A stretch of 64,000 nt of DNA from Entomortierella parvispora E1425 (taxonomy: Eukaryota; Fungi; Mortierellomycota), in assembly GCA_020891255.1 (NCBI GenBank), contig BQFW01000009.1, forward strand, positions 1,798,001 to 1,862,000, given 5' to 3'. Both the position numbers and the translations under genes were made by a program. The notes under the pieces were generated by a model. The model was not told the origin of the DNA. It was given only the letters and a program-made list of their open reading frames with translations, and did no database searches. This document shows positions 46,801-54,913 of the stretch, one piece after another. Numbering within the stretch: the first letter of the stretch is position 1; the number at the start of each line of letters is the position of its first letter.

Positions 46801-49800
46801 GACTTGTTTCTCCGCTGGAGGAGATGCACGGAGTTCAGGACAGCAGCCTCAAGCTGGATTACAGGCCATGCAACAATCACTTGGTTCTGAACACTCACTA
46901 CAAAGTACATCGGTTAGTCCAAGCCCCGCTCCATCCCATCACCCCTGACCTCTTGGACGCGGACCTCAGCCATCGCAAAGAGTACGATCTCTTCCAACGT
47001 AATCAGTGCAAGGCGTTTTGGCTGGATCTCCAATCTACCTCAGCAAATCTTACTACCGAGAGAGCACTGAACAAGGTCTCGATGGAAAGGCCATGGTCGG
47101 AGATCCGCCGAAACTTCCTTTTGAGTCTGTGCAACAAGCGTCTTTGGACAGACCCAATTCGTATCTCAGCTGAGCAAAAGAACATGCTGATGATGTATGT
47201 GGACAAGAAGCGGCAGTTTGCCCCCGTTGGTAACCGTGCTAAACTTGACAGAATTGCAGCCCAGACGGGTCTTCCGAGCGAGAGCGTTGCGCAATTTTAC
47301 AAGTCGCTCCAAGGTGCCTGGACCGCTCAGCAAAACCGAAAGCACGCCTTAGGAACGGTGACTCGCTTGAGCCAAGTGAAGAGGGTGCAGCCATCTGTAA
47401 AGGAGGTGGCAAAGTCGACTATGGCAACAAAGAAAACACCTGGACCGTCAGCAGCAGTCCAGGATAAGACATTGGAGACAGCAGAGGTCCGAGTGAAGAT
47501 TGAGCCGAACGCTGTTTGGACAGGTCTTGATACTCCGGGAGACCAACCTGCGCCATCCACCTCTACAGCCGCAGTAGAGCGTTCAGTGGTTGATGCACCT
47601 GAGGATTTGAGCCAGCTTGGCGACGACGAGCTCGATGGAAGTCAAGGAGGCGAAACTGCAACTGTCAAGCTGAACGACGACAAACTCTCCCTAGGACCCA
47701 TCAAGCAACGGCGTCGTACCAGAAGGAATTGGACGCCCGAACATGAAAATGAGCTATTGATTACAGTAGCTGTTGTTCGCAGTATGTCCGAGATTTACAA
47801 CAGTCGATTCAGTTGGGCCGCTGTTGCTCGAGTCTTCGAGGATCGGACGCCTGAGCACTGTCGCCATCGATGTGACAAGCTTCTTAGAGAACCTGACAAT
47901 GCCGCCCTGGTGGACTCTTACAAGCAACAGTTCGGCCACCAGTACCTTAACATTGCGCTGAAGGTTCCTATCGACCCCAACCTTAACAACTTTGATCCTC
48001 GGCAGGTGTTGAAGATATTTAGGCCGACAGTGAATGTTTCAGGGTAAGCGTCGCTGGAGCTCAGACAGAGAGGTCTATGCGTGTTTTTTTTTTTAAAAAA
48101 CGTAACTCTCTACTAACGTCTTCATATGATATTAGGGAGGTATTGAATGAAATAACCCCTCTCCCAAGGAACGCGGCCAAGGTGCTGACCACCTATAGTG
48201 TTCGACAAGAGGAAAGATACTCCAGTCTCTATGCAGAAGACAAGGTATACCCTCTTATGTCCCAACCGCGTCTAATCAGACTGCTCAGCTCTCTTCCGTC
48301 GACTCTCCGCCTGAGCACGAATCACGAGCTGGATGCGTTACCCTCGGATTTAAAGCCTCCGATGATGATGTCAACTACATGGCGGCAGCAGGGCAAAATA
48401 GAGGAAGTTCTGGCACGAACCGGAGCACCTACAGGAGCAATCGCAGTCAGAGATGAAGTCCTTGCTCGCCAGCACGTTATCTTCACCATCATGAAAGCTG
48501 TTTTCTCGACATCCCATAGTCCACAGACCGCAGACCTGACACGAGTCCTGCTTTCAAAATTCGATGCCAACCTCATCACAGACACTGTCCAGCTGGCGAA
48601 AGGAACCTGGAAACTGTTGATCAACCTGAAGGGCTCAACTTATCGAATCCCCGGTCAAAAGCTGGGTCGATCAGAGCGGCTAACGGCCTCGATGGTGGGT
48701 CTTGTTTCCTCGCAATGGACTTCAGAGGCATCAAGGATCGACAGTATCTACAGTAGGCTCGTCGAACGAATGTTCCAAGACGACGTGAGCCGAGCGGAGA
48801 TGATGGTCATTATGAGCCATGTGGGTCAGAACTGGCTAAAGCTCTCCGTTGCCCCGCTCTCTGAGGCTGAGAAAGTGACATTTGAACCGATTGGTGTGGA
48901 CGGACTGATCAAGTATGACGTCTGCATGAAGAACACGAGGGATACTTCTGCGAAAACGAGTCCAAAATCTTTGGAGGCACCGCTAGCGCCAGCAGGCGAT
49001 ATCAAAGGACTGAAGCGTGCAGGAGAGGATCTACTGAAGAGCGAGTTTGAGATGGATGATGTGCTTTCTCAGTCTGAGAAGTCCAAGAGAAGCAAAAGTG
49101 GAGACAAAGGCAAGGACAAGGAACCCGCAGAGACCATCGACCTGTGGGAGCAAGCTCGCCAAGATGCTTCGACAGCATTTGAACGTCATTTGAAGTCCAT
49201 TTCAGACGACAGTCGACGCCATCTGTTCCAGGCTATTTTCAACAATATTGAGGCTACTGGTTCTGTCGGTCTCAACCTTGTTGACCTCAAGGTAACTTCA
49301 TATCTCCAGTCTTCTGCGGCTTCTTTTATCATGTTGGACATTGAAATTAATCGTACCATTGCATTCAGGCTGCACTAGTGAAACAAGCCGTGGATTGTGC
49401 CGACAAGGATATCAGGGAGTGTGTTCGAATCCTGGAGTACTCGAAACCACCAATTATTTTCAATGTGGGAATGACATTGGACCGATATGTCAAATTTGGT
49501 GAACACGAATCTCGGACGATCAACTACCAGGAGGCTCTGGCATTTGTCATCACAGGAACGGAGGATAGTGAGAGTTCAATTGAGTCCAGGGCACCGTCGA
49601 ACTATGTTTCTCCCAGGACATGGAGGCGACTGGATGGCGTTTTCGATGAAATTGCATTTGAGAAATCTTTGCATGCTGTCGTCACTCATATTGCCGAGAG
49701 GCCAGGCATTACCAAGGTATGTTTTTTTTTTTTTTTTTTTTTTTTAATCTCACAAATCCGATTATGACCTTAGCCACTTGGCCTTGATCCCTAATGCCTT

Positions 49801-50216
49801 TACCCGCTGCTATACAGGGAATTCTCAATCGGGATTTATACATGGTTTTCATGTCCGTGGAGCTGGACGAGCTTTTGGAAGAACTTGTTAATCGAAAGGC
49901 TGTCTGGATGGAGTACTGCATTCTCCCTCCGCCTGCAGGTCTGTTTACTAAGCGAAGGATGGTCGAGCCCTGTGATAAGGATACGATTCATGATCGCAAG
50001 ATAACGAACCTGTTTGTTGTGCCGGATTACTACCGATATTTGGACATGGCATTGGTTCGAACCAAGGTGAAGGGGCCGATTCGCAAGGCAGACAAGAGTG
50101 ACGATCCTAACGAGGTGATTGAGGTTGAGGATGACGAGGAAGAGGAAGAGGATGAAGAGCCTGAGCCAGAGGATGAAGGAGAGCCTGAAGAAGACGAGGA
50201 GGACGATGATGTCTAG
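43812..50216 (+). CDS. TFC3: RNA polymerase III transcription factor TFIIIC B-block-binding subunit (Tfc3/Sfc3/GTF3C1)
   Basis: N-terminus MDDLVQFVQNEVALDGQPG|CSWDRFW...DEKFRYFLWNNL resembles GTF3C1. B-block winged helix ITASREVGVTQVVLAKQFSIDPKSMFHFLKVL; VIDRRTLYRTINLLE; Myb-like RRNWTPEHENELL...WAAVARVF; acidic tail. Confidence 0.85.
45675..45685 (+). promoter_or_regulatory. Perfect Pol III B-box motif without an A box (candidate extra-TFIIIC site)
   Basis: GGTTCGAATCC inside a CAGG-TTCGAAT-CCTG hairpin within a TFC3 exon; no upstream A box or cloverleaf is visible. Confidence 0.3.
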
Positions 50217-50400: not shown

Positions 50401-52802
50401 ATGTGTGGGAGAACTGCACAAGGACTGGTAAGAGAATCATTCGTTCAATTAGAGCGATGGTTGTGTGGTCTCTATGTCCATTGTGTCCATGTGCAGGTTG
50501 TGGTAATTCCCGCGTCTCTTCACATTCATTGCTGCTTAGCCACCCTCGCAGATTCAACAGGAATTGGAGCGCACTCTGCCCCGCAGACCCGAGGAATCGT
50601 GGATAGACGAGGATCGATATCGCACATCGTAAGTGCTCATCATCATGTATCGAGAGATATTGGTGGCAATTCTTGTCACCAACCTTTGACGCTTCCTTTT
50701 TTTTTTAATGTTCCTTCCTTCATCACGCCTTTTCGACCTCACCAAAACCAAAGATACAACGTTACACCGACACGTTACCAGCCTGTCGTCCGCGCAGAAG
50801 GCAGTTCGAATCAATATGTAGTTCATATGATGGTAGGTGACCTTCGCTTCCCCCCACCAGATCTGGGTGACCACAGGACATTTTCGACTTGATCTGACTC
50901 TTTAATGTCGTTTATTGTATTAGCGATGGGGACTGATTCCACACTATACAAAGACGATGCCGGACTATAACTCAGTTCTGAAGTCAATCAATGCCAGAGA
51001 CGACTCGCTCTTTGCCGGTCCTACCTGCAAGTCTATGTTCAACCATTCCAAAAACTACAAGCGATGCATCGTCCTTGCGGAAGGGTAACATCCTTTTGAA
51101 CATCATCTGCAACGCCAATGTATGACTTTTGATGACCTCCCTGGCTACCTTTACTAAAGCACATACCCGACAATCTAGGTTTTATGAATGGAGAAGACGA
51201 GGCAAGGACCGCGTTCCTTTTTACACAAAGCGCAAGGACGGTTGCCTGATGTTGATGGCGGCCATTTACGATGTTGCTCAGATCCAAGGCGAACCCCAAC
51301 CACTTTACACCTACGCCACCATTACCACCAACGCCTCGAAGCAACTGGAGTGGCTCCATGACCGTATGCCCGTCTTGATTCCCAACCATGAACCTGAAAA
51401 GATCAAAGCCTGGCTCGACCCGAAGGTGCCATGGAACTCTACGCTTGAATCCATGTTGAAGCCTTGCGACGAATATTTGGAGGCGATCGAGGATACCAGC
51501 ACTGAAGTCAAGGAGTCGGACAAGGCCACGAAAAAGATAGTATACGCGCTCGAGACATACCAGGTTGATGAGAAGGTCAACAGCGTGAAGAATGACTCTC
51601 CCGACTTTGCAAAACCTTGGAATTCGAGCTCCAACAAGAAGACTTTGAACCGGTTTTTCATGCCAGGAACCGCCATTGCACCTGACGACAACAAATCAAA
51701 GGATCCCAGCACGCAGAGTCCGGCGGTCGAACACCCTGACTCCACTACTGAAAAGCCAGCCTCATCGCCAAAGTCTGACGTGACGACGACTTCACCAAAG
51801 ATTGACAACCTGAACTCCACGCGCTCAAGACGAGTGATCAAAATGGAGAGCGACGATGAAGATGAAGGAGACTTGGCAACTGGAGTTGCAGGGGGAGAAT
51901 ATCGATCGATTTTGGCGCAATTACATCCAACGTTAGGGGGCCAAGGTCGATCTGAACCTGCAGATTTTGACCAGTCAGATGGAGGACTTGAGCAGAAACA
52001 TGAAGGACAGCGGCAAAAAGACAACAGCGACGGTGCGGACGAAGAGGAGGACGAGGATTTGAAGTTGGCACTTGAGGCGTCAAGAAGGGAACACGAGATG
52101 AATACGAGTTTTTCACGTTCGCAATCACCTCCTCTGTTTTTGACCTCGGGACCGGACGAGCCTGCACCTTCGACATCGGCATCCTCCGGCACACCACCAC
52201 CATCGGCCTCCGGGGCGATCACGCCCAAGCATACGGCTCTATCGTCGTCATCCTCATCGTCATCTTCAGGACGGTCACCACTGAAGGTTGACTCCCGTGG
52301 TACGGTAGACCTATTGGAGAAGCGGAAGGCGGATCTGAAACAGGAAGAAGATGAAATGAAGCAAGTTTTGGAACTCTCGCGCCTCCAAGCGATTGCCGAT
52401 GGCCATGACGACCCGTCATTGCTGCAGGAATCGGCCACCTTGTCTCAACAATCGCAAGTAGACTCATTGAAAGAACAGGAGCGAAGAAAGGAACAAGAGG
52501 ATTTGGACCGAGCCATCGCTGCATCATTGCAAGGACCAGAAGAGGGTCAATCGACATCACCGAGAACGAGGGCTACATCCGAATCATCTTCCTCATTCCT
52601 CTCACAGCAGTCCACTGCTTCAAACAGTAGCTCGGCTTCTGGATATCCAGCCTCACCATCGCCCAAAAAATCAAAGTCCCGGGCCTCCATTGAGGCACCC
52701 TCGCCTAAGAAACGAGGCAACTCCGGTCCAGTCTCGTCACCAGCCTCAAAGAAGAACAAACCAAACCAGGCCAGCATCACTAGCTTCTTCCAACAGAAAT
52801 GA
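50401..52802 (+). CDS. HMCES: HMCES/SRAP (DUF159) abasic-site protecting protein with long C-terminal tail (3 UIMs, PIP box)
   Basis: MCGRTAQGL|PPSQIQ (catalytic Cys2), RTS|YNVTPTRYQPV, RWGLIP, INARDD, RCIVLAEG|FYEW, TYATITTNASKQLEWLHDRMPVLI, VDEKVNSVKND. Four GT-AG introns. Confidence 0.93.
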
Positions 52803-52974: not shown

Positions 52975-53648
52975 TCACTCCTCCACCCAGTCATCCGATC
53001 CAATCCACTCTGAAGGCGAAGGGTTCAAATCACTTTGACCTTGAGCTTTAGTCGATGACTCGTAAAGCAGACCCATGCCATCCAAACTACAGATTGGCTC
53101 TAATACGGATGTATCTTCGGGGTCCGAGGGCAACAGAACTGGTGATGGCAGTGGCTCCTTAGTCAATGAGCAATTGATATCGGTTTCCACGTAGACATCC
53201 GTAAAAAAAGAGGCGCTTTGAGATGAACATTGGTTGATTGCGCATCCTACTCCTATCGCCGGGGCATCATACTTCTCATTACCACTGATGCCGTACAGGA
53301 AGTAGTCATGTTGCATCTCGGCAATACTTTCAATCTGAAGTTGATGTCCTGCGAGCTGATTGGGTGGTGGCCAGTCTGGGGAAACAGACATCACGGACGA
53401 CATGAACGACATGGCGGGACCATCTGTTGCATTTGCGGACGGACCCAAATTCTTGACCACGAGGATTTCGTTCCTCTCAGCAAGATCTGCATCATGAGTG
53501 CCAGTTGTGTCAGCAAACGAGGGTGAGAGGGATACTTCCATCCTTAATCCGACTGAGGCTGTCCCTACTTCTGACTCCACATGAACAGTCGTACTGAGTG
53601 GCAGACTGGGGGCTGGAACTGTCAGAGAAGTTGTCTTTTCTCTGAAAG

Positions 53649-53681
<33 letters not shown>

Positions 53682-54913
53682 GTCTGTCTCCGCCTGTTGT
53701 GGTGATACCTCCTTCCTTCGACGCAGATGATGGAGTGTATGGGATTGCTTTGCACTTATCATTCTGGGGAGACAGCACTTCTGGCGCCTCCACTGACAGG
53801 TATCGTGTGCGAAGGGAACTAGCCACAACAGCCGGACCCCCTTTTTGCGCCGAGCGCCTATCGACTTCAGGCCTAAAGGGATATTGGAGCTGCTTCAGAT
53901 CGTCCACTTCCCCAGAAACTTCCGAAAGTGCTTCAACTTTGCACTGTCGAGACCGATATTCATTGCAAATGGCAATATGCCTCTCCTAATACAAAAAAAA
54001 AAAAAAAAAAAAAGTTAGAAAGAGGACCTTCATTATGACCATCATGGACCTTTTTGCACGTACGGGAATCAGCAAAGGCTCCTCCTCTTCTTCCACCTCC
54101 TCCTCTATCTCTTCAGCCTCATCTTCATCCTGAGCCCTTACTTCGCAGTCGTTGAAATCGTATATATACTCTGCGTCATCCTGATTCAGCGAGACATTGT
54201 TGCTTCGAAAGGCTCCATAGTTGAAGTATGTTGGTGGCTCATAGCTCTGGCCCTCTCTGCCACGAGACTGCACACGATTGCGCTTGGACGATGATGTGCC
54301 CTCATCTTCGTATTTGACGCCCACCCCACCGCTTCTTTTAATCGTCTCTGCTGAAAGTCTGTGCATGGTGGAGTCATGATCTGGCAATGATCGAAGTTGA
54401 AAGGCCTCACCAATCCAATCGAACGACGACGATTTGAGCATGTCCAGACAGTCGAGTCTGGCAGAGTTGTAGCTTGATGGATCTACGGAGAATACAGTGT
54501 GGCGCCATATATCCCTATATTAGGAAGGGAGGTGCGGATGCGCTCGACTTTGCTTTAAAACGTACCATGATGCGCGGCTTTGAGATCAAGCTCCTCATAA
54601 AATTCAGAGGTTGATCTTCCCGATTGCTTGTTTGGCGACTTGGGCTGCGGATTGTTTGGATATATTGTCGACGGATACCGACTTTGGCGGTTCTCCTGAA
54701 AGAAAGAGAGGGTACTTCCTTGATCTAGAGTATTTCTGCGTTGACGTTCAAAGAACTGCCTCTGCTTCACTTTCTCTTCTGAAGCATGGATTCTTGTCCT
54801 ATTCCAAACAAAGAATCCATGGAGTCAGAGAGAGAGAGCAATATGGTCATCCATTTCCCGTGAGAAGACGGCATATATTTGTGCCCACACCTTCGCCCTC
54901 CTGTCCAGTTCAT
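52975..54913 (-). CDS. Uncharacterised low-complexity protein with REDIC1/C12orf40-like N-terminal motif; splicing of the 3' part unresolved
   Basis: Exon 54913-54891, intron 54890-54799 and exon 54798-54566 give MNWTGGRR|TRIHASEEKVKQRQFFERQRR; the next exon gives DPSSYNSARLDCLDMLKSS. I could not splice cleanly into ORF 52975-53907. Confidence 0.55.

Follow-up and report, generated by a model that had tools for sequence, protein, structure and literature searches.

Proteins of the HMCES type shield abasic sites in DNA, and active questions in this field concern how HMCES is recruited to such sites and how its covalent crosslink is cleared later on. The locus described here raises the question of whether such a shield can itself carry a device for reading ubiquitin. 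It lies in a window of 64,000 nucleotides (the whole stretch of DNA that was analyzed, from contig BQFW01000009.1, with all positions below given in window coordinates on the forward strand unless stated otherwise) of Entomortierella parvispora, a soil fungus of the Mortierellomycota. The gene encodes EMPS_07219, a HMCES/SRAP orthologue of 659 residues that bears the database title "hypothetical protein" (P0001, found by word search with 100% identity to the last exon). It is almost certain in our view that this protein is a HMCES and that it combines a SRAP domain with three ubiquitin-interacting motifs (UIMs) and a PIP box. With conserved UIMs beside a PCNA-docking motif, the protein is a hint from evolution that a shield can include such a device.

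The gene occupies positions 50401-52802 in five exons, and each of its four introns begins with GT and ends with AG. Exon 1 (50401-50427) contains the ATG start and encodes residues 1-9 (MCGRTAQGL) with Cys2, the predicted catalytic nucleophile, before the GT donor at 50428. Exon 2 (50540-50628; AG/GT borders) encodes residues 10-39, the last of which is split by the intron, and its acceptor at 50540 is backed by the Actinomortierella orthologue P0057. Residues 39-65 come from exon 3 (50754-50832; AG/GT borders), and residues 66-119, in the middle of the SRAP domain, from exon 4 (50924-51084), which on its own already matches Pfam SRAP with an E-value of 4.2e-08. Exon 5 (51179-52802) is a single open frame for residues 119-659 and the stop codon, and alone it reaches an E-value of 5.6e-27 for SRAP and 31.2 bits for UIM. 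The exons were translated and searched singly and each was mapped in order onto P0001, with exons 2, 3 and 4 starting at its residues 10, 40 and 66, whereas the full-length analyses were made on P0001 itself. An earlier note on this DNA, made from the letters alone, had given the range 51636-52802; the motifs it named are indeed found there, but this range covers only the tail of a gene that begins at 50401 and is interrupted by four introns. Since the Glu and His motifs of the SRAP domain and the entire tail are located within one unbroken exon, no splicing is needed to join them. The flanking open reading frames at 49794-50216 (forward strand), 52975-53907 and 53986-54441 (both reverse strand) are without a Pfam match. 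An antisense open reading frame of 375 residues at 51311-52438 overlaps the tail, and we take it for a probable by-product of the repetitive, low-complexity codon content there.

In SRAP proteins, the cysteine following the initiator methionine is the nucleophile that forms the thiazolidine. EMPS_07219 has this residue in the motif MCGR (50401-50412), and the protein aligns to the solved structures of human HMCES (5ko9, 6oe7) and of YedK. Cys2 is aligned with Cys2 of the human protein (5ko9), the catalytic Glu in GFYEW with Glu127 in the human DGFYEW, and the catalytic His in LHDRMP with His210 in the human IHHRMP. The Pfam SRAP profile (PF02586) covers residues 1-222 of the full protein with 197.7 bits against a cut-off of 27.1 (E-value 2.3e-58). 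The intact domain with Cys2, Glu and His that had been read from the DNA letters is thus confirmed, and by all available sequence criteria the SRAP domain is predicted to be an intact abasic-site crosslinker of the HMCES type. AlphaFold2, run with an alignment of 57 family sequences, modeled this domain poorly (pLDDT about 40-70) because the family alignment is shallow; the model was used for the tail helices only, and SRAP membership rests on sequence.

The tail of about 390 residues contains three matches to a UIM pattern of three or more acidic residues and then hydrophobic-x-x-[A/V]-x-x-x-S. UIM1 is encoded at 52041-52091 (residues 407-423, with the best Pfam UIM stretch at 408-424), UIM2 at 52344-52391 (residues 508-523) and UIM3 at 52491-52535 (residues 557-571). 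The Pfam UIM profile (PF02809) scores 30.2 bits on the full protein, which is above its gathering score of 21 and is a sum over three stretches, as it is for the 31.2 bits of exon 5. Both Pfam profiles that had been proposed as a HMMER check of the architecture therefore score above their cut-offs. UIM1 and UIM3 fit the consensus fully, whereas UIM2 has Val, here and in most relatives, at the position of the consensus Ala that contacts Ile44 of ubiquitin; the Actinomortierella and M. alpina orthologues possess Ala at this place. The three UIMs of the earlier note hold up in this respect, except that UIM2 departs from the consensus at that residue and that UIM1 had been placed 3 nucleotides off. 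In 20,000 composition-matched shuffles of the tail, a single match to the UIM pattern occurred in 0.66% and two or more matches in none, which excludes a chance origin of the UIMs. The AlphaFold2 model from the family alignment shows a mostly disordered tail, and its only confident helices, 408-431, 497-525 and 531-569 (pLDDT 72-94 overall, 76-86 in the first and 80-91 in the last, which includes UIM3), coincide with the UIM regions. The helix predicted at 269-279 is weaker and covers an internal FF motif, and the remainder of the tail has a pLDDT below 50. A search of the ESM Atlas with residues 490-575 returned generic long-helix matches only (DivIVA, NUDE_C and others) and no match to the feature.

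How these motifs behave in evolution could be followed in an alignment of 57 sequences that represent about 20 genera or species groups of the Mortierellaceae. Almost every full-length member has all three UIMs, a PKKRK-like basic patch and ITSFF at its C-terminus, and constraint is highest on the hallmark residues of the UIMs. Averaged over the motif islands, the commonest residue has a frequency of 0.69-0.84 (0.69 for UIM1 and 0.79 for UIM3), compared with 0.24-0.30 in the linkers between them and 0.69 in the SRAP domain; UIM3 is the best conserved of the UIMs, its segment AIAASL being at least 90% conserved. The helices that the earlier note pointed out are therefore conserved at the level of the islands in about 54 orthologues of the family. 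The pattern detects at least three UIMs in 42 of 56 Mortierellaceae members and two in 12, and Pfam finds PF02809 (UIM) in 35 and PF23625 (UIM_2) in 32 of the 57. The DNA of one metagenomic relative (L001, encoding P0002; dS about 0.7-1.1) served as comparator for dN/dS, which amounted to 0.075 in the SRAP part and 0.16 in the tail; of the tail segments, the motif islands had 0.065 and the linkers 0.19. These values indicate that the tail is translated and under purifying selection, which is strongest at the motifs. The order of the motifs is fixed among orthologues while their spacing varies (41-132, 40-74 and 63-116 residues), and the tail motifs are strung on flexible linkers instead of forming a rigid tandem reader. 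In the Mortierellaceae, the HMCES tail has gained a fixed series consisting of an internal FF motif, UIM1, UIM2, UIM3, a basic patch that is a probable NLS, and a PIP box.

The two FF motifs at the ends of this series have a wider distribution. The internal one, KKTLNRFF (51636-51659; residues 272-279), is located about 10 residues past the SRAP fold and is conserved throughout the family (56 of 56 Mortierellaceae). Of 199 SRAP relatives outside this family, 136 have KxNIANFF as its equivalent, at a constant 72-74 residues downstream of the catalytic His. KKTLNRFF had been called PIP/RIR-like. The position and the PIP-like character hold, but the RIR reading was rejected, as an RIR has FF followed by a helix-compatible stretch devoid of Pro, and here FF is followed by M-P-G-T; orthologues show FFFAK, FFMPK and similar. 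Judged by these residues, KKTLNRFF remains a putative PIP-like motif and is not filed as an RIR. The C-terminal motif QASITSFF (52767-52790; residues 649-656), which leaves only QQK before the stop codon, fits Q-x-x-[ILM]-x-x-[FY]-[FY], so that the exact PIP box announced by the earlier note is borne out by the translation. A canonical PIP box arose in 0.11% of the tail shuffles (20,000 trials). Four residues of QASITSFF (I652, T653, F655, F656) reach at least 90% conservation in the Mortierellaceae, and 53 of 56 Mortierellaceae, like 147 of the 199 relatives from outside the family, have a PIP-like core (hydrophobic-x-x-FF) among their final 16 residues. A canonical Gln in register is much rarer, with 4 of the 56 Mortierellaceae and 12 of the 199 other relatives; EMPS_07219 has it in common with its three closest relatives only, and other Mortierellaceae have a Gln one residue off register. 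Many proven PIP boxes lack the Gln, and streptophyte algal SRAP members end in a fully canonical Q-x-x-L-x-x-F-F. The PIP-like core at the C-terminus is thus general in fungal and algal HMCES, and from their presence in most fungal relatives, both FF motifs are general features of fungal HMCES and not special to EMPS_07219, although only the C-terminal one has a known vertebrate counterpart. Just upstream of the PIP box are the basic patches PKKRG (52704-52718) and KKNK (52749-52760), with an island value of 0.80 and with K630, R631 and K643 at least 90% conserved; by their composition they are likely an NLS.

The UIMs are distributed much more narrowly. The comparison set of 199 SRAP relatives outside the Mortierellaceae was obtained by word search and by an exhaustive HMMER search that covered 1.84 billion representatives, and just 10 of its members match the UIM pattern. 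Umbelopsis ramanniana (P0245) has one UIM with 26.1 bits, U. isabellina reaches 20.4 bits and one further SRAP relative 21.1 bits. The chytrid Phlyctochytrium arcticum (P0266) shows two pattern matches with a Pfam score of 18.3 bits, which is below the cut-off, and a match also occurs in the chytrid Powellomyces hirtus. Matches in Wallemia hederae, Teratosphaeria and Hortaea are weak, and a few Dothideomycetes are among the carriers. No UIM was found in the SRAP proteins of Rhizophagus and Diversispora (Glomeromycota), Lichtheimia (Mucorales), Jimgerdemannia (Endogonales) and Calcarisporiella, nor in the sampled Basidiomycota and most Ascomycota of this set. The U. ramanniana and P. arcticum proteins possess the same order of SRAP, internal FF, UIM, basic patch and ITSFF, with one or two UIMs instead of three, and the single UIM of U. 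ramanniana aligns to the UIM3 segment of the Mortierellaceae. A survey of the combination of SRAP and UIM, as suggested before, finds it lineage-restricted in these sets, to Mortierellaceae, Umbelopsis, two chytrids and few others. This distribution may reflect either one old gain with subsequent losses or repeated gains; as most fungal HMCES lack a UIM, the UIMs are dispensable for the core function of HMCES. In our literature search, no paper joined HMCES or "SRAP domain" with UIM, and the main text of the founding SRAP paper by Aravind et al. 2013 (PMC3765255) mentions neither UIM nor PIP. Public precomputed Pfam tables nevertheless tag PF02809 on EMPS_07219 and about a dozen relatives. The statement of the earlier note that no UIM-bearing HMCES was known agrees with the searched literature, but it has to be qualified by these tables and by the UIMs in Umbelopsis, chytrids and few Dothideomycetes; the architecture is visible computationally and undescribed in the searched papers.

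What such a tail could do is best considered by comparison with known systems. The DNA polymerase eta C-terminus is organized as UBZ-NLS-PIP and that of SPRTN as PIP-UBZ, and both proteins engage ubiquitinated PCNA at stalled forks. EMPS_07219 resembles them in that a predicted ubiquitin-binding module is followed, in a disordered tail, by a basic patch and then by a PIP box at the C-terminus, and it differs from them by three predicted UIM helices in place of a zinc finger and by being a putative abasic-site crosslinker instead of a polymerase or protease. Vertebrate HMCES (human Q96FZ2; Xenopus) likewise has a SRAP domain with Cys2, Glu and His and a disordered tail that ends in a PCNA-interacting motif, but this tail is short, with fewer than 100 residues and no reported UIM, whereas the much longer fungal tail has three UIMs, a basic patch and a second, internal FF motif. 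The order of ubiquitin-binding domain, basic patch and PIP box as in polymerase eta and SPRTN, together with the PIP box of vertebrate HMCES, leads us to favor a HMCES orthologue whose tail would recognize both ubiquitin and PCNA as a two-part reader, an explanation that we hold tentatively as a whole, at somewhat below an even chance. The PIP box would dock on PCNA like that of vertebrate HMCES, and three low-affinity UIMs may contribute avidity for ubiquitin that is attached to PCNA or close to it, be it the Rad6-Rad18 mono-ubiquitin or Rad5 K63 chains. This would enrich the SRAP domain at stalled forks and in post-replicative gaps, the places at which abasic sites arise in single-stranded DNA. 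The reading of ubiquitinated PCNA as the actual mechanism is slightly more tentative still. In Xenopus, the conserved PIP box of HMCES has been reported to mediate PCNA binding, but in Xenopus extract it was not absolutely required for the suppression of breaks, which counts against a two-part reader (bioRxiv 10.1101/2021.07.29.454365); in the literature, binding of HMCES to PCNA is shown for the vertebrate protein only. The Val in UIM2, the limitation of the PIP Gln to the closest relatives and the lack of UIMs in most fungal HMCES also speak against it. It is possible, though rather doubtful, that the HMCES of the Mortierellaceae (and with fewer motifs that of Umbelopsis and some chytrids) is wired into ubiquitin signaling, so that shielding would be conditional on the ubiquitination of PCNA or the crosslinked protein would promote its own ubiquitin-dependent removal. 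If true, this would be a natural, built-in form of the coupling between HMCES crosslink and ubiquitin, which vertebrates achieve in trans. The tail of this non-model fungus has been assembled from widespread motifs, in few lineages only, and the function that the earlier note proposed for it, to read ubiquitinated PCNA or its own ubiquitinated crosslink, is plausible by analogy.

As alternative to recruitment by ubiquitinated PCNA, the UIMs could serve the disposal of the protein. They would then recruit a ubiquitin-charged E2/E3 for coupled ubiquitylation or hold ubiquitin chains, and the HMCES-DNA crosslink would be efficiently ubiquitylated and handed to a DPC protease of the Wss1/SPRTN type, to Cdc48 or to the proteasome. 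That UIMs confer ubiquitylation on their carriers has been shown for the Arabidopsis peptidase DA1, in which they sit on an enzyme domain, bind ubiquitin and drive its own ubiquitylation, and has been discussed for epsin (PMC5322733), although the catalytic fold and the pathway of DA1 are unrelated and DA1 has no PIP box. Ubiquitylation of the HMCES-SRAP crosslink strongly enhances its cleavage by SPRTN in vitro (bioRxiv 10.1101/2024.11.26.625192), and conserved Lys-rich patches adjoin the UIMs and the PIP box of the fungal protein. However, the sequence does not allow a ubiquitylation site or an E3 partner to be deduced, HMCES crosslinks are reported to reverse also by themselves without proteolysis, and clearance is needed as well in the majority of fungal HMCES that have no UIMs. 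We regard a role in self-marking for removal as rather unlikely, yet as the main alternative.

A reader function could also be directed at other ubiquitin on damaged chromatin, such as that of histones, K63 chains or ubiquitinated RPA, or the UIMs could take part in an intramolecular switch after mono-ubiquitylation of the tail, in both cases independently of PCNA ubiquitination. Repair factors that contain ubiquitin-binding domains often use chromatin ubiquitin signals, and three UIMs on flexible linkers favor avidity for multiple or chained ubiquitins. RAP80, another protein of the DNA damage response with multiple UIMs, has two of them joined by a short fixed linker that sets its K63 specificity. 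In the family of EMPS_07219, by contrast, the UIMs are 40-132 residues apart and this spacing varies, which makes linkage-specific reading by geometry unlikely and argues against a rigid tandem reader; a linkage-specific reading of the RAP80 type was accordingly rejected. As furthermore UIM3 is consistently neighbored by the basic patch and the PIP box, an arrangement suggestive of PCNA, we think that a target other than ubiquitinated PCNA is quite improbable. That the UIM-like helices are mere chance in an acidic, low-complexity tail, or that the tail is a gene-model artefact outside the SRAP protein, is effectively excluded and extremely improbable despite the richness in Ser, Glu and Asp and the antisense frame running through the tail, given the absence of two or more motifs from all 20,000 shuffles, the conservation in about 54 orthologues, the low dN/dS of the tail and its motifs, and the single unbroken exon that the tail shares with the Glu and His motifs.

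One segment of the tail may do more than take part in reading ubiquitin and PCNA. The longest conserved tail block (52299-52412; residues 493-530) contains UIM2, flanked by VDLLEKRK and AIADGHDD, and shows a conservation of 0.69-0.76, with a helix at 497-525 (pLDDT 72-94). It exceeds the length of a UIM, A525 and H528 are nearly invariant, the near-invariant segment AIADGH is outside the UIM consensus, and its UIM2 carries Val for the consensus Ala in most members; the block may thus bind an additional or different partner.

The longest conserved stretch in the disordered tail of the HMCES orthologue EMPS_07219 is the block around UIM2, the second ubiquitin-interacting motif (VDLLEKRK ... AIADGHDD; window 52299-52412, aa 493-530). 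Since Ala525 and His528 of this block are near-invariant and both lie outside the UIM consensus, the block may contain a second, as yet unrecognised motif.

Two further segments of the tail are candidates for a connection with SUMO. In about half of the Mortierellaceae orthologues, including P0006, P0009 and P0029, a block Q-E-Q-V-S-V-A-A-D-D-S-Q-R-D-A-G-F is conserved, which, judged from its sequence, looks like a SUMO-interacting motif, with acidic residues after a hydrophobic core. The corresponding columns in E. parvispora lie upstream of UIM1 (window 51945-51995, aa 375-391), and the block is degenerate in this species and its nearest relatives. The second segment, VIKMESDDEDE (window 51834-51866, aa 338-348), is a candidate SUMOylation site that matches the consensus hydrophobic-K-x-E and continues into a run of acidic residues. 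Only 17 members of the Mortierellaceae have a comparable pattern in their tails. A SUMO site has been reported in the tail of human HMCES (bioRxiv 10.1101/2024.11.26.625192).

Among the SRAP relatives, P0108 and P0161, which have 670 aa each, derive from metagenome/Logan contigs and fall into different 50% clusters, possess, at the C-terminal side of the SRAP domain, the zinc-binding domain of cytidine/dCMP deaminases (PF00383; cut-off 25 bits), which scores 29 bits in P0108 and 39 bits in P0161. P0108 carries the internal motif KSNIANFF and P0161 the equivalent RSNIANFF. Either a base deaminase and the abasic-site shield are naturally fused in these proteins, or the two are fused gene models. 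Other extra domains were seen in P0144 from Umbelopsis isabellina (971 aa), with a HATPase_c fragment at the N-terminus, and in P0143 from Tephrocybe sp. (725 aa), with a C-terminal protein kinase domain; both are probably merged gene models.

The HMCES gene is flanked by three ORFs, one on the plus strand (window 49794-50216) and two on the minus strand (window 52975-53907 and 53986-54441), none of which gave a match in a Pfam search at E 0.01. Two of the three have acidic low-complexity tails, and all three probably belong, as exons, to genes that are unannotated or evolve fast.
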